From positions 122,711,589-122,775,588 of the forward strand of contig NC_092374.1 of NCBI RefSeq assembly GCF_030028105.1: a DNA stretch of 64,000 nt. Direction: 5' to 3'. Positions 6,293-62,190 of this stretch are shown here, piece by piece (within the stretch, counting starts at the first letter, position 1; each line of letters starts with the position of its first letter). The translations under genes and the position numbers were made by a program. Below the pieces are notes generated by a model. It was given only the letters and a program-made list of their open reading frames with translations, searched no databases and was not told the origin of the DNA. Source of the stretch: Mobula birostris. Lineage: Eukaryota.

Positions 6293-9063
6293 TCAGAATT
6301 GTTTCGGGGTGGGAACAGAAATGGAGAGACTGGGGAAGAGGAGGTTGGCTCACAAGTAGAGAAAGCTTGTAGACAGTGCGAGAGGGAGGATAGGCAGGTG
6401 ATAGAGAAGGGACGTGCTCAGACCGAAGGTTTGAGATGCATCTATTTTAACGCAAGGAGTGTTGTGAACAAAGTGGATGAGCTTAGAGCATGGATCAGTA
6501 CTTGGAGATATGATGTGGTGGCCATTACAGAGACTTGGATGGCTCAGGGGCAGGAATGGTTACTTCAAGTGCTGGGTTTTAGATGTTTCAGAAAGGACAG
6601 GGAAGGAGGCAAAAGAGGTGGGGGTGTGGCACTGTTGATCAGAGATAGTGTCACGGCTGCAGAAAAGGTGGATGCCATGGAGGGACTGTCTATGGAGTCT
6701 CTGTGGATGGAGGTTAGGAACAAGAAGGGGTCAATAACTTTACTGGATGTTTTTTATAGGCTGCCCAATAGTAATAGGGATATCAAGGAGCAGATAGGGA
6801 AACAGATCCTGGAAAGGTGTAATAATAACAGAGTTGTTGTGAGGAGAGATTTTAATTTTCCAAATATCGATTGGCATCTCCCTAGAGCAAGGGGTTTAGA
6901 TGGGGTGGAGTTTATTAGGAGTGTTCAGGAAGGCTTCTTGACACAATATGTGGATAAGCCTACAAGAGGAGAGGCTGTACTTGATTTGGTATTGGGAAAT
7001 GAACCTGGTCAGGTGTCAGATCTCTCGGTGGGAGAGTACTTTGGAGATGGTGATCATAATTCTATCTCCTTTACAACAGCATTGGAGAGAGAAAGGAACA
7101 GACAAGTTAGAAAAGCATTTAATTGGAGTAAGGGGAATTATGAGGCTATCAGGCAGGAAATTGGGAGTTTAAATTGGAAACAGATGTTCTCAGGGAAAAG
7201 TACAGAAGAAATGTGGCAAATGTTCAGGGGATATCTGTGTGGAGTTCTGCATAGGTACATTCCAATGAGACAGGGAAGTTTTGGTAGGGTACAGGAACCG
7301 TGGTGTACAAAGACTGTAATAAATCTAGTCAAGAAGAAAAAAAAAAGCATGCAAAAGGTTCACAGAGCTAGATAATGTTAGACATCTAGAAGATTATAAG
7401 GCTAATAAGAAGGAGCTAAAGAAGAAAATTAGGAGAGCCAGAAGGGGCCATGAGAAGGCCTTGGCGGGCAGGATTAAGGAAAACCCCAAGACATTCTACA
7501 AGTATGTGAAGAGCAAGTGGATAAGATGTGAAAGAATAGGACCTATCAAGTGTGACAGTGGGAATGTATGTATGGAACCGGAGGAAGGAGCAGAGATACT
7601 TAATGAATACCTTCCTTCAGTATTCACTATGGAAAAGGAACTTGGTAATTGCAGTGATGACTTGCAGCTGACTGAAAAGCTTGAGCATATAGACATTAAG
7701 AAAGAGAATGTGCTGGAGCTTTTGGAAAGCATCAAGTTGGATAAGCCACTGGGACTTGATGAAATGTGCCCCAGGCTACTGTGGGAGGCGAGGGAGGAGA
7801 TTGCTGAGCCTCTGGCGAGGATCTTTGCATCATCAATGGGGGCTGGAGAGGTTCCAGAGGATTGGAGGGTTGCAGATATTGTTCCTTTATTCAAGAAAGG
7901 GAGTAGAGATAGCCCAGGAAATTAGAGACTAGTGAGTCTTACTTCAGTGGTTGGTAAGTTGATGGAGAAGATCCTGAGAGGCAGGATTTATGAACATTTG
8001 GAGAGGTATAATATGATTAGGAATAGTCAACATGGCTTTGTCAAGGGCAGGCCATGCCTTACGAGCCTGATTGAATTTTTTGAGGATGTGACTAAACATA
8101 GTGATGAAGGAAGAGCAGTAGATGTAGTGTACATGGATTTCAGCAAGGCATTTGATAAGGTACCCCGTGCAATGCTTATTGAGAAAGTAAGGAGGCATGG
8201 GATCCAAGGGGACATTGCTTTGTGGATCCAGAGCTGGCTTGCCCACAGAAGGCAAAGAGTGGTTGTAAATGGGTCATATTCTGTATGGATGTCGGTGACC
8301 AGTGGTGTGCCTCAGGGATCTGTTCTGGGACTCCTTCCCTTCATGATTTTTATAAATGACTTGGATGAGGAAATGTTACTAAATTTGCTGATGACATGAA
8401 GATTGGGGGTGTTGTGGATACTGTGGAGGGATGTCTGAGGTTATAGTGGGACATCGATAGGATGCAAAACTGGGCTGAGAAGTGGCAGATGGAGTTCAAC
8501 CCAGATAAGTGTGAAGTGGTTCATTTTGGTAGGTCAAATATGATGGCAAAATATAGTATTAATGATAAGACTCCTGGAGGTGCTACCCCTCCCTGACACC
8601 CATATACCCCTTATGAGGATAGGTTGAGTGAACTCATTCTTTTCTCCTTGGAGCAACGGAGGATGAGAGGTGATCTGATAGAGATGTATAAGATGATGAG
8701 AGGCATTGATCGTGTGGATAGTCAGAGGCTTTTTCCCAGGGCTGAAATGGTTGCCACAAGGGGACACAGGTTTAAGGTGCTGGGGAGTAGGTACAGAGAT
8801 GTTAGGGGTAAGTTTTTTACTCAGAGAATGGTGAGTGCGTGGGATGGGCTGCCGGTAGCGGTGGTGGAGGCGGATACTTTAAAGAGTCTCTTTTAAGAGA
8901 CTCTTAAGTCTCTTTTGAGAGTCTTGGATAAGTACATGGAGCTTCGGAAAATAGAGGGCTACACGGAAGCCTAGTAATTTCTAAGGTAGGGACATGTTCG
9001 GCACAACTTTGTGGGCTGAAGGGCCTGTATTGTGCTGTAGGTTTTCTATGTTTCTATGTTTCT
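6293..9063 (+). mobile_element. CR1 LINE, 5'-truncated, ORF2 (APE endonuclease and RT) with frameshifts, stops and an internal deletion
   Basis: YFNARS, AITETW, GGGVALL, DFNFP, SQHGF, YMDFSKAFD, GVPQGSVLG motifs; (TTCTATGT)n tail; TSD AGATCAC at 6286-6292 and 9064-9070. Confidence 0.97.
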
Positions 9064-13881: not shown

Positions 13882-14110
13882 TATTCAGAAATCTGATGAC
13901 AGAGGGGAAGAGGATATTCCTGAATCATTGAGCATGTGCCTTCAGGCTCCTGTACCTCTTTCCTGATGGTAACAATGTGAAGAAGGCATATCCTGGATGA
14001 TGGAGATCTTTCATGATGGATGTCATCTTTTGAGGCATCACTCCTTGAAGACGTTCAGGATGCTGGAGAGTCTAGTGTTCCAGAAACTTTACAACTTTCT
14101 GCAGCTTATT
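13882..14110 (-). mobile_element. Rex1/Babar-like LINE 3' fragment (tail at about 11880-11950)
   Basis: Homologous to 28765-29000. Confidence 0.75.
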
Positions 14111-16890: not shown

Positions 16891-18240
16891 ATTGTGCTTA
16901 CATTATGCCAAGATTTGCTTGCTAGATGAACAATTAACTTGATGAAGTTCAAAACTGAAGTCATGGGCTCCTTCGTACACCAACTGGGATGCATGGCTGA
17001 GTTTATATTGCTTAAATATGCCAAAACTGGAACTATGTTCAACCCATGGATATTGAATCCCATGGGTAAGAGGTTAGTACGTTGTTTTGGGATGTGTAAG
17101 GCATCAGGGATGTGTAGAGGAACAATGAATGAGACAGTTTTTGGTTTAAGCCATGCCTTCTTACAGTTAATATTTTGGTACTTTCAATGAATAAGAATTG
17201 TAGTCACAATTTAAAATTTTGCCTCAGAAACATCAGTCTCGGTGTTGATTTTACTTGATGTAAAAATAAACCAGCATTTGTGAATATTTTTGATGTTACA
17301 GGTGTGATCATGCAGATTCAACGAGTAGCCTTTAAAAATGGAAAATGACATATCACTATATCACTACATTGCTATAGTGTCAGGATACTTGATGGAACTT
17401 GCTCAGTTTTGCCATTAATCTTGTCTCAATAGATTGCTTTATATATGCTTTTGCCATGGGTGAAAATGCATGCAATGTAAAAATATGCTTGAGAAATACA
17501 TTTGACAAGTCAGCTTTGGATTTGATTGATGCATGACTCTTCACATGATGTGAGCAAAGAATCACTCTACAAAAAAGCCTTAGTTTCCACAGAGGGAGAT
17601 AGGCTATAGTAAACATGATCACTTAAGCAGAAAATGTGAGCTCTAAACCAACATGAACTTGGCAGCTGAATATTGACGAACCACACCATTGCCTTTATCA
17701 TATTAAGGTTTGCATTGTGGAGCTCTGTGAGGTGAAACAAGTGAAATTTGTGGAGTTAGAGTAAAAAGGGCCTTACAAAAATGATCTGGAAAGTGCATTG
17801 TTTTGGAGTAGATCATTCTGAAATACTGTTGAATTCCTAACTCTGCTGTTCAAAGTAAATTGGAAAAGGAAATCCTTGAAGTGGGGCAAATCAGCTTTGA
17901 TCGCAACTTCTTGTAGGATGTCACACTACAGTGGCCTACAACAAAATATAAATAGATGGGAAGAAATCCAAAGTGATAAATTCAAATGATATTGTAAATC
18001 TCAGACACAGTCAGAATCAGAATCAGGATTAATATCACCGGCATACCGTTTGTTGAGAAATTTGTTGTTCTGTGGCAGCAGTACGTTGTAATACATGGCA
18101 ATAAAAACTATAAAATTAATATGAAGTAATAAATTAAATAATTAGTGCATAAAGAGAGGGAGAAATACTGAGGTATTTCAGAAATCTGATGGCAGAGGGA
18201 AAGAAGCATTGAGTGTGTGTCTTCAGGCTTCTGTACCTCC

Positions 18241-18810
18241 GGTTCGGTCACTGGCCGCTCAACCATGGTTTTCGGTCGGGTGCCGGACGCTCGGAGAGAT
18301 TCTGCGGGAGCGGGCGCCCAGCGCTTGGCCAGGGGCCATGGTCGAGTGGTCGGCGACTTGGGCCGGCTCCCCCTCCAGATTTAGTCTAGTCAGGAGGGTG
18401 TGAGGACACCCAGTAGGACCATAAAAAACAAGACCTGACAAAGGGCGGATGAGCTCCTTGTGAGCCAACGGCCATCTTCCATGGAAGAGATTAAAGCCTC
18501 ACTACGTATCTACGAATCGTATGCTATGCACTTAGTTAGAAGAGACATGATGAACTTGGGCGCTGCACCATGTGCCTGGACCTGCCCAAGGCCTCAGCCT
18601 AAGGAAGGGCCGAGCTCGAAGAAGCAGCCGCGGCTGGAGGCCGAAATGGCCTCGAGCTTGAGTTCGGCGGGGGTGGTGGTGGGCGGTGCCAAGGCATCCA
18701 GCGAGCACAAACTGGAGGAGAGGCTGTACTCGGTGTTATCGCAGGATCGAAGAAGATGGAGGTGCATAGCCGCCAACCCCGGATTCAGGACGGCACCCAC
18801 TGACTGACTG
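18241..18810 (+). mobile_element. Non-autonomous bipartite RTE-clade element (5' UTR plus 3' end) carrying a host gene fragment
   Basis: TSD ACCTCC at 18235-18240 and 18811-18816; 3' end QDRRRWRCIAANP is an RTE ORF C-terminus; (TGAC)n tail; CpG-rich, in contrast to the flanks. Confidence 0.8.
18562..18739 (+). pseudogene. ZFTRAF1: Circularly permuted 178-bp fragment of ZFTRAF1/CYHR1 N-terminal coding sequence
   Basis: 18598-18739 encodes PKEGPSSKKQPRL...[12 protein letters not shown] and 18562-18597 encodes (C)[11 protein letters not shown]; the recalled vertebrate CYHR1 motif is [25 protein letters not shown]. Confidence 0.88.
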
Positions 18811-19449
18811 ACCTCCTCTTTGATGGTAGCAATGAGAAGAGGGCATGCCCTGGGTAATGGGGATCCTTAATGATGGAAGCTGCCTTTTTCAAGTATTGCC
18901 TTTTGAAGGTGTTCTGGATGTTGGGGAAGCTGGTGCACTTGATGGAGCTGGTTGAGTTTGCAACTTTCTGCCGCTTTCTCCATTCCTGTGCAGTGGCCGG
19001 TCCACAGCATTCAGTGATGCTGGTAGTTGCAATGTTCTCCAAGGAACATCTGTAGGAATTTGCAAGTATCTTGGGTGACATATCAATTCTACTCATAGCC
19101 TGACCCATTCATTATGTTATTACATTTGATCAAATTATCGCACAGTCTGTAGAATAGAAAGGTGTAGATCTTTTAGTCTAGATTAACAACCAAAATGTTT
19201 TGGACTGTGAATTATTCCCATATCCTCCCCTCTGCAATATTTAAAAGCCTCAATATGACTCATGATATGAAGATACTACTAGTGAACAGCGTACGCCCAC
19301 TGAAGCTAAAATCTTTAAATTGATAAAATAGTAAGCTTCTTATGGTACGATATCATCTTGGTCTTTATTCATGAACAGAAACAGTTGATATTGTACCATT
19401 TTCCAATCACATTTTTGCTTTCTGAGTGAAGATAAATTGATGCAGCTTT

Positions 19450-21395: not shown

Positions 21396-21527
21396 NNNNN
21401 NNNNNNNNNNNNNNNNNNNNNNNNNNNNNNNNNNNNNNNNNNNNNNNNNNNNNNNNNNNNNNNNNNNNNNNNNNNNNNNNNNNNNNNNNNNNNNNNNNNN
21501 NNNNNNNNNNNNNNNNNNNNNNNNNNN
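21396..21527. other. Assembly gap (132 N)
   Basis: Run of N. Confidence 1.
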
Positions 21528-28536: not shown

Positions 28537-29430
28537 CAGAATTGGAATCAGAATCAGGTTTATTATCACTGGCATGTGTCCTGAAATTTGGTAACTTAGC
28601 AACAGCAGTTCAATGCAATATGTAATATAGAAGAAGGGAAAAAAATTATAAATGCATAAGTAAATCAATTACAGTACGCGTATATTGAATAGATGAAAAA
28701 TCATGCACAAGCAGAAATAATATACATTTAAAAATGAGGTAGTCTCCATTTAGTGTTTAATGTCCATTTAAGAATCAAATGGCAGAGGGGAAGAAGCTGT
28801 TCCTGAATCGCTGAGTGTGTACCTTAAGGCTTCTGTACCTCCTACCTGATAACAACAGTGAGAAAAGGGCACGCCCTGGGTGCTGGAGGTCCTTAATAAT
28901 GGACGCTGCCTTCCTGAGGCACTGCTCCTTGAAGATGTCATGGATACTTTGTAGGCTAGTACCCAAGATGGAGGCAACCAAATTTACAACTCTCTGCAGC
29001 TTCTTTCAGTCCTGTACAGTAGCCACCCTCCCCCCCCCCCACCCCCTTACCAGAGAGTGATGCAGCCTGTCAGAATGCTCTCCACGGTACATCTATAGAA
29101 GTTTTTGAGTGTATTTGTTGACATACTAAATCTCTTCAAACTCCTAATGAAGTATAGCCGCTGTCTTGCCTTCTTTATAACTGTATCAACATGTTGGGAC
29201 CAGGTTAGATCCTCAGAGATCTTGACACCAAGGAACTTGAAACTGCTCACTCTCTCCACTTCTGATCCCTCTGTGACGATTTGTATGTGTTCTTTCATCT
29301 TACCCTTCCGGAAGTCCACAATCAGCTCTTTCATCTTACTGACATTGAGTGCCAGGTTGTTGCTGTGACACCACTCCACTGTTGGCATATATCGCTCCTG
29401 TACGCCCGTTTGTCACCACCTGAGATTCTC
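28537..29430 (-). mobile_element. Rex1/Babar-like LINE, RT C-terminal part and 3' UTR
   Basis: WCHSNNLALNVSKMKELIVDFRK, FKFLGVKISEDLTWS, FYRCTVESILTGCIT, RFRNSFFPSAI. Confidence 0.93.
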
Positions 29431-39829: not shown

Positions 39830-40056
39830 CTAGTAAATTGCCAAGTTCAGAGAATAACTCAACCCAACTATAAATTATACACAATTTTTACAATATTCCT
39901 TGTGTCAGGTCTATGATCAGAAGAATTAGATGAGAACAATAAATAAAACAAAGTCCATTGCACGGAAAAGTGATCAAAGTGGTCATAGGGTTGCTAACTG
40001 TAGTGAATAGAGCTGTGTTGGTGGGTTCAAGAAGAAACTGTGCGGTGTGGGACTTC

Positions 40057-40580
40057 AGATTTCTACAGATACACCATGGAGAGCATTCAAACTGGTTGCA
40101 TCACCATATGGTATGGAGGGGCCACTGCACAGGATCAGAAAAAGCTGCAGAAAGTTGTCAACTCAGCCAGCTTCATCTTGGCCACAAGCCTCCCCAGCAA
40201 CCAGGACACCTTCAAATGGCAATGACTCAAAAAAGCAGCATCCATCATTAAGGACCTCCATCAACCAGGACATGCCTTCTTCTCATTGCTATGATCAAAG
40301 AGAAGGTACAGGAGCCTGAAGACACACACTCAATGTTTCAGGACCAGATTCTTCTCCTCCACCATCGGAAATCTGAATGGACAATAAACACTTCCTCAGT
40401 ATTTTCTTCTCCCTCTCTTCTTGCATTGCTGATTTAATTTATTCATGCATATATACTGTACTTATTATAATTTATAGTTTTTAAATTATTATGTATTGCA
40501 AAGTGCTGCTACAGCAAAACAACAATTTTCATGACATACGGCATGCCAGTTATATTAAACTTGATTCTGATTTCTGATTC
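40057..40580 (+). mobile_element. Rex1/Babar-like LINE 3' fragment
   Basis: FYRYTMESIQTGCITIWYG; (TTCTGA)n tail. Confidence 0.88.
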
Positions 40581-49074: not shown

Positions 49075-49790
49075 GGCTCAAAGGATGAAAGTGTTGATCA
49101 GCCTTGATGTTTTTGAGTCTAGTGGTCTTGGCATGGATGCCGTGTAGGCTCTTCCCTGATGACTATGTGAGAAACAGTCCATAAGCAAGGTGGATGGATC
49201 CTTCATGATATTGCTGACCTTTTTCTGAGACCTTTCTGTATATATGTTCTTGATAGTAGGTAGGCAGGTGCTGGTGATGTGCTGGACTTTCTGCTGCAGT
49301 GCAGTTTCCATACCACATAGGAACTCTCCCCTGTTATCTAAATGAGTGAAACTCCACTTAGCCGGCTCAGCTCTAAGTTTTAATCAGAAAATCCCCTGCA
49401 TTGGTTTTCCTCTTTCACCACTACTGGATTAGTCGAGGATCCGTCTTCAGTAATTCTCTGGCTGTCACTTAGCATCTGAAAGTTTCAAATTCAATTAGCT
49501 CCATCATGGGCATGAGCCTCCCCAACATTCAAGATATCTTCAAGGATTGAAGCCTCAAAAACATGGCATCCGTCATAAAGAATCCCCTTCAACTGGATCA
49601 TGCTCTCTTGTCATTTCTACTATCAGGGAGAAGGTGCAGGAACCTGAATGCACACACTCAATGATTCAGGAACAGCTTCTTCTTCTCAGCTATCAGATTT
49701 CTGAATGGATATTGAACCCACGAACACTACCTCATTATTATGTTTTTCTCATTTTGGACTAATTATTTAATTTAACTTTATATGTGGTAT
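49075..49790. mobile_element. Rex1/Babar-like fragments (about 49075-49315 minus; about 49495-49790 plus)
   Basis: LPTIKNIYTER...NIMKDP; CAGGAACAGCTTCTTCTTCTCAGCTATCAG. Confidence 0.7.
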
Positions 49791-50610: not shown

Positions 50611-52743
50611 ATAGAAACATAGAAAATAGGTGCAGGAGTAGGCCATTCGGCCCTTCGAGCTTGCACCACCATTTATTATGATCATGGCTGATCATCCAAC
50701 TCAGAACACCGCCCCAGCCTTCCCTCCATACCCCCTGACCCCCGTAGCCACAAGGGCCATATCTAACTCCCTCTTAAATATAGCCAATGAACTGGCCTCA
50801 ACTGTTTCCTGTGGCAGAGAATTCCACAGATTCACCACTCTCTGTGTGAAGAAGCTTTTCCTAATCTCGGTCCTAAAAGGCTCTCCCTCTATCCTCAAAC
50901 TGTGACCCCTCGTTCTGGACTTCCCCAACATCGGGAACAATCTTCCTGCATCTAGCCTGTCCAATCCCTTTAGGATCTTATACGTTTCAATCAGATCCCC
51001 CCTCAATCTTCTAAATTCCAACGAGTACAAGCCCAGTTCATCCAGTCTTTCTTCATATGAAAGTCCTGCCATCCCAGGAATCAATCTGGTGAACCTTCTT
51101 TGTACTCCCTCTATGGCAAGGATGTCTTTCCTCAGATTAGGGGACCAAAACTGCACACAATACTCCAGGTGTGGTCGCACCAAGGCCTTGTACAACTGCA
51201 GTAGTACCTCCCTGCTCCTGTACTCGAATCCTCTCGCTATAAATGCCAGCATACCATTCGCCTTTTTCACCGCCTGCTGTACCTGCATGCCAACTTTCAA
51301 TGACTGGTGTATAATGACACCCAGGTCTCATTGCACCTCCCCTTTTCCTAATCGGCCACCATTCAGATAATAATCTGTTCTCCTATTTTTGCCACCAAAG
51401 TGGATAACTTCACATTTATCCACATTAAATTGCATCTGCCATGAATTTCCCCACTCACCCAACCTATCCAAGTCACCCTGCAGCCTCTTAGCATCCTCCT
51501 CACAGCTAACACTGCCACCCAGCTTCGTGTCATCCGCAAACTTGGAGATGCTGCATTTAATTCCCTCATCCAAGTCATTAATATATATTGTAAACAACTG
51601 GGGTCCCAGCACTGAGCCTTGCGGTACCCCACTAGTCACCGCCTGCCATTCTGAAAAGGTCCCGTTTATTCCCACTCTTTGCTTCCTGTCTGCTAACCAA
51701 CTCTCCACCCACACCAATACCTTACCCCCAATACCGTGTGCTTTAAGTTTGCACACTAATCTCCTGTGTGGGACCTTGTCAAAAGCCTTCTGAAAATCCA
51801 AATATACCACATCCACTGGTTCTCCCCTATCCACTCTACTAGTTACATCCTCAAAAAATTCTATGAGATTCGTCAGACATGATTTTCCTTTCACAAATCC
51901 ATGCTGACTTTGTCTGATCATTCCACCGCTTTCCAAATGTGCTGTTATCACATCCTTGATAACTGACTCCAGCAGTTTCCCCACCACCGACGTTAGGCTA
52001 ACCGGTCTATAATTCCCCGGTTTCTCTCTCCCTCCTTTTTTAAAAAGTGGAGTTACATTAGCCACCCTCCAATCCTCAGGAACTAGTCCAGAATCTAACG
52101 AGTTTTGAAAAATTATCACTAATGCATCCACTATTTCTTGGGCTACTTCCTTAAGCACCCTGGGATGCAGACCATCTGGCCCTGGGGATTTATCTGTCTT
52201 CAATCCCTTCAATTTACCTAACACCACTTCCCTACTAACATGTATTTCGCTCAGTTCCTCCATCTCACTGGACCCTCTGTCCCCTACTATTTCTGGAAGA
52301 TTATTTATGTCCTCCTTAGTGAAGACAGAACCAAAGTAATTATTCAATTGGTCTGCCATGTCCTTGCTCCCCATAATCAATTCACCTGTTTCTGTCTGCA
52401 GGGGACCTACATTTGTCTTTACCAGTCTTTTCCTTTTTACATATCTATAAAAGCTTTTACAGTCCGTTTTTATGTTTCCTGCCAGTTTTCTCTCATAATC
52501 TTTTTTCCCCTTCCTAACTAAACCCTTTGTCCTCCTCTGCTGAACTCTGAATTTCTCCCAGCCCTCAGGTGAGCCACTTTCCCTGGCTAATTTGTATGCT
52601 TCTTCTTTGGAATTGATACTATCCCTAATTTCTCTTGTCAGCCACGGGTGCACTACCTTCCTTGATTTATTCTTTTGCCAAACTGGGATGAACAATTGTT
52701 GTAGTTCATCCATGCAACCTTTAAATGCTTGCCATTGCATATC
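50611..52743 (-). mobile_element. Young CR1 LINE, 5'-truncated, RT domain nearly intact
   Basis: 470-aa and 199-aa ORFs lie in one frame separated by a single TGA at 51328-51330; FADD motif intact; CpGs retained. Confidence 0.98.
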
Positions 52744-53049
52744 CTACCCTATTCGTTTGCATGAGATCCTGGCCCTTGATTGAAAAGGTAAGGACATGTA
52801 GGTAATTTGGTGCTTCTTTTTTATTTTATTTAAGGTTAATATTTTTAATCATTTGAAGGTTAAACATATCTTTAAATGAACTTATGATTTAATTATCTAA
52901 ATCTCTTTGAACAGGTTTTAAATGCTGCAAATCATCAGACATGCTTACATGTCATTCTCAGGCCTTTGACAGCAGCAAAAGGCTCTCGGTGTAGGTCATG
53001 GAAGGAGCCTCAGGATTCATTACCTTGGGCTGTGTTGCTGTTTATGGAA

Positions 53050-53968
53050 GTGTTAGATTTTGTAATTTCAAAACATTGAACTAATTCAAAGGGAATCTGA
53101 AATGTGTCTAACGTCATGTTCACTTTAAGTGAGGCACGCACGTGTCACGTGGTAGTGTGATGATGTATGCAATTCACGCATTTACACATACAACCTGTAA
53201 TGAATAAGATCGCTTAATCAACATATATATATATATGTACGGGGTTTTTTTTGTATGTTAAATTTAAAATGTCTTCTTTGTTATGTTATACTTGAGAATG
53301 CTTCTTTGTTATGTTAAACGCTGAGAAAGTCCTTCCCGCTAGCAGTTTGTTGAAACACATTACTGATAAGATGTTATGAACCAATTGGGATAGTTGTTAT
53401 GTTTTTGGTGTATTTGAAGATACTGTATGCGTGGGGTTTTGGGGGAGAAGATGGGAGAGAAAGACAGAGGAATAACCAGGTGCTGTGAGTCTGCTAACGG
53501 GGTCGGACCCTGAGGAGGGCGTTCGGCGAGGAGAGGAGACGGAGACGGACTCATATGGAGCGTCTGGTCGACCACCGTTGTTGGTCCCAGGCAGCCGGTT
53601 GAGGTGGTCCGAAGGGTCGCATGGTGAAGAAGAAGGGTCTTGAGCTCCAACTGTTTTGTGCACGAAGAGATTGAACTTTGATAAGTGTGGCGCCTTTTAT
53701 TTTCCTTTTATATTTTATTCTCTATTAATTATATAGTTCCAGTAATATCTATAAACTGTAACTCATTTAATCGTATCTGATGTATTGTCTGTTATTTGGG
53801 GGGGGGGGGGGTACATCACACAGCATCCACACAAACTAATTACCCAGTTTGGCGGGGCTGAGTGCTGTTTCCCTAGATGACAGCGAGCCGTGCGACCCTG
53901 AGGGTGGCCGGGGGGCTACATGTACACACACACACACAAGATTACTCAAATATTAAATGCACAACAGA
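53050..53968 (-). mobile_element. Gypsy-type solo LTR (family of 9194-9449) split by a younger LTR
   Basis: TTTAAGTGAGGCACGCACGTGTCACGTGGTAG is the reverse complement of about 9326-9357; resumes at about 53925 with ATTACTCAAATATTA. Confidence 0.75.
53236..53920 (+). mobile_element. Young solo LTR (685 bp)
   Basis: TGTA...TACA termini; 4-bp flanks TATA/TGTA; CpG-rich; inserted in a (TA)n tract. Confidence 0.7.
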
Positions 53969-59697: not shown

Positions 59698-60047
59698 TCA
59701 CTAAGGACCCCCCTCACCCAGGTCACACCTTGTTCCCATTGCTACCATCAGGAAGGAGGTACAGAAGCCTGAAGGCACACACTCAGCTATTCAGGAACAG
59801 CTTCTTCCCTTCTGCCATCTGATTTCTGAATGGACACTGAACCTATTAACACTACCTCACTACTATTTTATTTCCATTTTTGCACTACTTATTTAATTCA
59901 ACATAACATACACACACATACATGTATAATGTTAATTAATGTTTCTTTCTATTACTATGTATTACATTGTACTGCTGCCGCAAAGTCAACAAATTTCATA
60001 ACACTTGCCAGTGATATTAAAGCTGATTTTAATTCTGATTCAAATTC
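59698..60047 (+). mobile_element. Rex1/Babar-like 3' end
   Basis: KDPPHPGHTLFPLLPSGRRYRSLK; TTCTGA tail. Confidence 0.85.
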
Positions 60048-61658: not shown

Positions 61659-62190
61659 GTTGACAAGTGAAAATAAAAATACAAGAGAAAAAAATACAAG
61701 TAGTGAGGTGGTGTTGATGGTTTCAATGTCCATTCAGAAATCTGACAGCAGAGAGGAAGAAACTGTTCCTGAATTATTGAATGTGTGCTGGCAGGCTTCT
61801 GTATCTACTCCCCGATGGTAGCTTTGAAAAGACGTCATGTCCTGAGTGATGAGGGATCCTTCTTGATGGATGCTACCTTTCTGAGGCATTGTTTCAGCCA
61901 GAGAGTGGTGAATCTTTGGAATTTTATTCCCACAGACAGCTGTGGAGGCCAAGTCTGTATGTATATTTAACGCAGAGGTTGATAGATTCTTGATTTGTCA
62001 GGGCATGAAGGAATGTGGGGAGAAGGCAGGAGACTGGGGCTGAGAGGAAAAATTGATCAGCCATGTTGAAAAGGCAGAGCAGACTCGATGTGCCAAATGG
62101 CTTAATTCTGCTCCAAAGTATTATGGTCTTATGCTTCTTGAAGATGTCCTGGATGCTGGGGAGGCTAGTGCCGATGATGGAGTTGGAGCT
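61544..62190 (-). mobile_element. Rex1/Babar-like 3' fragment with (TA)n at 61627-61655 and a nested CR1 3' end (about 61888-62132, +)
   Basis: LPSIQDIFKK; SQRVVNLWN insert ending TATGGTCTTATG. Confidence 0.8.

Follow-up and report, generated by a model that had tools for sequence, protein, structure and literature searches.

The DNA analysed here is a 64-kb window (by which we mean the whole stretch that was examined). It is vertebrate-like in composition, with approximately 40% GC and a window-wide ratio of observed to expected CpG (CpG o/e) of 0.26. At positions 18241-18811, on the plus strand, it contains a 571-nt unit that consists of a 5'-truncated LINE ending in (CTGA)3, is enclosed by a target-site duplication, and carries a foreign insert at 18562-18739. 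The unit interrupts an interspersed repeat that is older and some 400 nt long; the parts of it on either side lie at 18100-18240 and 18813-19100.

The LINE unit and its target site

The LINE body (18241-18561, plus strand) is rich in both GC and CpG, starts abruptly at 18241, and is unique in the window. An ORF-like frame runs through it from 18439. Beyond the insert the element resumes with its 3' end (18740-18811, plus strand), which provides 21 final codons of the ORF and closes them with a TGA at 18805-18807; the (CTGA)3 tail occupies 18800-18811, so that the stop codon itself sits within the tandem repeat. The frame remains open across the insert: 122 codons on the plus strand (18439-18804) lead out of the LINE body, through the whole of the foreign piece and into the LINE tail, and two stops in the same frame lie just upstream. 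This open frame was considered as a signal of selection and rejected as such, since 14% of 20,000 shuffled versions of the insert were also free of stops.

Pfam assigned no family to either of the two pieces of the LINE body that were submitted, and the copy comprises only the 3' end of the element. The tail peptide contains D-R-x-x-W-R, which we take to resemble the ends of many LINE ORF2 proteins. Neither a second copy of this LINE nor an uninterrupted version of the point at which the insert sits was present in the 64-kb window. A 24-nt LINE pattern gave 0 matches there, a 21-nt pattern from the LINE tail (allowing up to 3 mismatches) matched itself alone, and blastn of both LINE parts against the window returned self matches alone. 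With three LINE peptides as tblastn queries, the best non-self matches in the window had E values of 0.2-0.65, and no reverse transcriptase or endonuclease sequence of the inserted LINE's family, labelled RTE in the original prediction, was detected in it. The window does hold two other LINE remnants, both CpG-depleted, one on the plus strand at 6299-8399 (Exo_endo_phos, E 1.3e-12) and one on the minus strand at 50701-52740 (RVT_1, E 1.2e-33). By tblastn, both are unrelated to the LINE tail of the unit at 18241-18811.

Several further features of this region were recorded. The 5' part of the LINE fragment (18241-18400) has a GC content of 63% and includes, at 18265-18381, an ATG-started frame of 39 codons that then meets a stop and has no match in Pfam; this part may be LINE coding sequence with frameshifts, or it may be a second foreign piece. 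A SINE-like head upstream was considered and rejected: the 3 Rfam matches scored far under their gathering scores (13-16 versus 35-70 bits), and ARAGORN found 0 tRNAs. A run of 132 N at 21396-21527 is an assembly gap or a masked stretch.

The sequences flanking the unit revealed how it had been inserted. When they were compared with the rest of the window by blastn, the left flank matched seven other places and the right flank six, with identities of 68-79%, and these matches define the older repeat. The window contains at least seven copies of it (68-79% identity), the others lying at approximately 40052-40452, 49478-49783, 28766-29024, 59698-59830, 61733-61891 and 13884-13958. Six other copies are uninterrupted at the insertion point, and in these the motif (A)CCTCC occurs once. 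At the locus under study the motif is found twice, as (A)CCTCC at 18235-18240 (plus strand), at the end of the interrupted repeat, and as CCTCC at 18812-18816 (plus strand), directly after the unit. Because the repeat is uninterrupted elsewhere and the motif is doubled here, we identify the two copies as a target-site duplication around the LINE unit. The A at 18811 can be assigned either to the duplication or to the tail, and the duplication around the 571-nt unit is accordingly 5-6 bp long. The unit thus has both a flanking target-site duplication and a short tandem-repeat tail that follows directly upon the ORF, as a LINE copy does. We read it as a 5'-truncated LINE copy that target-primed reverse transcription placed here, with the older repeat as its target.

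The foreign insert and its rotated reading frame

The insert (18562-18739, plus strand) lies in the same sense as the LINE. Its letters were as originally quoted, with a length of 178 nt and a GC content of 0.64. Of these, 176 nt are unambiguously foreign, and the remaining 2 nt are shared with the LINE edge and can be assigned to either partner. The insert falls into two segments. The first, of 36 nt, is free of stops in the frame originally assigned to it and ends in AG. The second (18598-18739, plus strand) is 142 nt long, encodes 47 codons without a stop, and contains an internal ATG at 18646; translation showed that its reading frame extends upstream of that ATG. The original prediction had proposed that these two segments stand in swapped order, such that joining the last base of the insert to its first would restore a continuous coding sequence. 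We carried out this join with a script, and the reading proved to be open as proposed: one frame runs through 59 codons, and each of the other two contains a stop. It is only once rotated in this way that the insert has a single open frame, and after rotation the 142-nt segment becomes the upstream part of the gene piece.

The piece presumably derives from the host gene ZFTRAF1/CYHR1; we take it to carry a motif that stands at the start of that protein's RING-like domain, and this motif spans the rotated joint. The native donor gene is absent from the 64-kb window. The 47-residue peptide of the downstream part found 0 families in Pfam and 0 chains in the PDB. At the nucleotide level, the 142-nt downstream part has a single counterpart elsewhere in the window, an exact match of 16 nt in which positions 18715-18730 of the insert recur at 6966-6981 (blastn E 0.007) inside the endonuclease ORF of another LINE. 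This match is probably due to chance, as the reading frames differ.

The edges of the insert required some correction of what had been proposed. A CGC duplication at both edges had been reported, and CGC is indeed present at 18561-18563 and at 18740-18742. However, the left CGC shares two bases with the start of the insert, which is why only 176 nt are unambiguous. It had also been stated that excision of the insert would restore the LINE end as GCG CAG GAT CGA. Removal of exactly 18562-18739 does not yield this sequence, whereas removal of 177 nt, shifted by one base, would.

CpG preservation in the insert and the LINE

As a measure of age we determined CpG o/e for four parts of the unit, of which three belong to the LINE and one is the 142-nt downstream segment of the insert. 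The LINE body gave values of 0.79 (18241-18436) and 0.72 (18437-18561), the LINE tail gave 0.78, and the insert segment gave 0.84. By comparison, the two 1-kb flanks had values of 0.19 and 0.29, three host-repeat copies had 0.05-0.20, and the remnants of two other LINEs had 0.19 and 0.32. When 628 windows of 571 nt across the whole stretch were ranked by CpG o/e, five that overlap the LINE unit or its left flank occupied the 4th to 8th places. Since all four parts show equally little CpG decay, the LINE unit is young and, by this measure, the insert and the LINE surrounding it are of one age. Equal decay fits a joint arrival of the insert and the LINE, without proving it.

The highest CpG o/e in the stretch was found elsewhere, at 53000-53770, where windows of 571 nt reached 0.89-0.96 at 41-44% GC. 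This segment is situated a short way upstream of the ORF for reverse transcriptase in the minus-strand LINE remnant, and its ORFs are all short (52-96 aa). Either a young insertion or an unmethylated island could account for it.

Origin of the permuted piece

The origin of the piece is most simply explained by a closed circle or a circle-like template, to which an exact permutation by one turn points, and to this extent the circle footprint originally proposed has held up. The further proposal, that a DNA circle integrated at this site, did not find support. According to it, a free 178-bp DNA circle would have been inserted right here, into a LINE copy that was already in place. Such an event could have left the exact permutation and also the CGC found at either edge. 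However, the LINE fragment around the insert has a tail and a target-site duplication of its own, the CpG o/e of 0.84 in the insert's 142-nt part shows the same preservation as the 0.72-0.79 of the LINE parts, and the LINE frame continues through the insert. We therefore regard local integration as very improbable. The LINE fragment's own tail and target-site duplication, together with the matching CpG preservation, indicate instead that the capture most likely took place in an ancestor of the LINE lineage and that the site examined here is a retroposed copy. That the insert came as cargo of the LINE, and not by local insertion of a circle, is in our judgement very likely. The idea of a circle-derived piece captured by a retroelement thus survives, moved back to the founder of the LINE lineage.

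Our preferred explanation is that the site represents the target-primed insertion of a LINE copy that already bore the swapped piece, and that the piece had been captured once, from an RNA circle. We consider this account as a whole probable; the judgement covers the complete statement and leans towards its first half, the arrival as cargo, which is the better supported. For the second half, an RNA circle as the first source of the piece, we would put the case at slightly under even. The capture would have been a single event in an ancestor of the LINE lineage. The reverse transcriptase, copying the LINE RNA from its 3' end, would have left its template about 70 nt in and gone on to copy a small closed RNA derived from the host gene. 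With one turn completed, the enzyme would have met the duplex at its own point of entry and stalled there, and it could then have returned to the LINE RNA by way of a 2-nt match (GC) at the left edge. The product would have been a chimeric element, in frame, that continued to retropose. Both the 2-nt match and the in-frame insertion are steps that we infer. Reverse transcriptases run many turns on circular RNA, and a copy of exactly one turn for this reason needs the stalling argument.

A circle of DNA could also have served as the source. In that case a microDNA-type eccDNA, formed from the gene's 5' coding region, would have been cut once and ligated into an active, full-length master copy of the LINE, and would then have spread by retroposition. 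A single cut explains the exact turn, with its overlap of no more than 2 nt, without any extra assumption. Moreover, the resemblance to microDNA noted in the original prediction was borne out: taking microDNA to be about 100-400 bp long, GC-rich and drawn from the 5' part of genes, the piece fits with its 178 nt, its 64% GC and its genic origin, in which the frame extends upstream of the ATG. Against this, a rare germ-line hit in a master copy would be required, and no result favours DNA over RNA. The orientation argues for RNA, because a switch of the reverse transcriptase from its template to another RNA invariably gives the sense orientation, as RNA copying demands, whereas a DNA circle would do so half of the time. 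The AG at the end of the first segment, typical of exon ends, tilts mildly in the same direction, although it is a weak indication. RNA is also favored by precedent, in that the junction of one circRNA has been found in 33 inherited copies near retrotransposons (PMC4897178). We judge a DNA circle in a master copy to be unlikely.

It is also conceivable that no circle was involved. The reverse transcriptase could have jumped from LINE RNA to a linear RNA of the gene, from there end-to-end onto a second such molecule, and back to LINE RNA; alternatively, a tandem duplication in the donor could already have contained the junction. Precedents for parts of this route exist. One report describes double template jumps and tripartite chimeras in LINE reverse transcription (PMC2104539), another describes chimeras of sense RNA and LINE with one target-site duplication as common (bioRxiv 10.1101/2025.02.02.635956), and it has been cautioned that open-ended, structured RNAs can give rise to non-colinear junctions (PMC4897178). 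This route, however, needs at least three switches, and the enzyme would have had to enter and exit on neighbouring bases by chance in order to leave one turn (176-178 of 178 nt), so we consider it decidedly unlikely. Finally, the permutation might be only apparent, if the piece does not come from ZFTRAF1/CYHR1 or its parts do not adjoin in the native gene, with the open frame arising by chance or the arrangement by an assembly error. The lack of any Pfam family or PDB chain for the 47-residue part would be in keeping with this. It is opposed by the rotated frame, which alone is open over 59 codons, and by the motif that crosses the joint. It is opposed as well by a comparison of sampled words, a measure that covers the whole 2.4-kb stretch around the LINE unit and is not specific to the insert junctions: fractions of 0.64-0.68 of these words were present in the runs of one organism and 0.43-0.44 in those of a second. 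The same words reached 0.12-0.19 in twelve more rows (organisms B to G). An apparent permutation seems to us highly improbable.

Relation to known systems and implications

The closest parallel to a piece captured from an RNA circle is found in mouse, where 33 pseudogenes contain the back-splice junction of circRFWD2 and have flanks enriched in LTR sequences (Dong et al. 2016, PMC4897178). The way in which circular RNA enters germ-line DNA was there called mysterious. The piece described here shares with those circRNA-derived pseudogenes (PMC4897178) an apparently non-colinear order relative to the parent gene (suggested here by the rotated reading, which alone is open), an association with retrotransposons, and the lack of a poly(A) tail of its own. 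It differs in consisting of one short segment, roughly an exon, that represents exactly one turn, and in being embedded, in frame, in the coding 3' end of a LINE that continues on either side of it. The unit also resembles the U6/L1 and mRNA/L1 chimeras (bioRxiv 10.1101/2025.02.02.635956) and the tripartite ones (PMC2104539), in that a foreign RNA in sense orientation is fused directly to the 3' part of a LINE and one target-site duplication encloses the whole chimera. In U6/L1-type chimeras the foreign RNA, which is colinear, precedes a 3' fragment of the LINE, whereas here the piece is permuted and LINE sequence flanks it on both sides. The reverse transcriptase must here have returned to its LINE template. 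As for the reintegration of microDNA or other eccDNA, the likeness lies in size, high GC and a source in the 5' portion of a gene; the difference is that the piece travels with a retroelement, and nothing shows a DNA intermediate.

In the accessible part of the eccDNA literature, no documented case of germ-line reintegration of a nucleosome-sized circle was found. Likewise, the accessible literature yielded neither a published example of a permuted exon piece inside a LINE nor a publication that connects CYHR1 with circular RNA; the supplementary pseudogene tables of PMC4897178 could bear on the frequency of such pieces within retroelements.

The event at the site itself was not unusual: a LINE copy inserted into an older repeat. 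The interest attaches to the family to which that copy belongs. What the site contributes is a target-site duplication that can be read clearly, together with the argument from CpG. We suggest, tentatively and as a reading that falls some way below an even chance, that a LINE lineage of cartilaginous fish took up one exact turn of a 178-nt circRNA of a host zinc-finger gene, in frame at the end of its ORF, and kept on retroposing. If the piece is indeed one turn of a circle within an active LINE, the copies that bear the insert would mark a single capture, open to dating and to tracing across species. From the two LINE junctions one could then read how the enzyme entered a circular template and how it left it, and the family would supply many dated copies of one occasion on which a LINE reverse transcriptase copied a circRNA and returned to its own template. 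Few germ-line cases allow a circle of RNA to be distinguished from one of DNA, and this family would provide a natural record of circular RNAs entering germ-line DNA.
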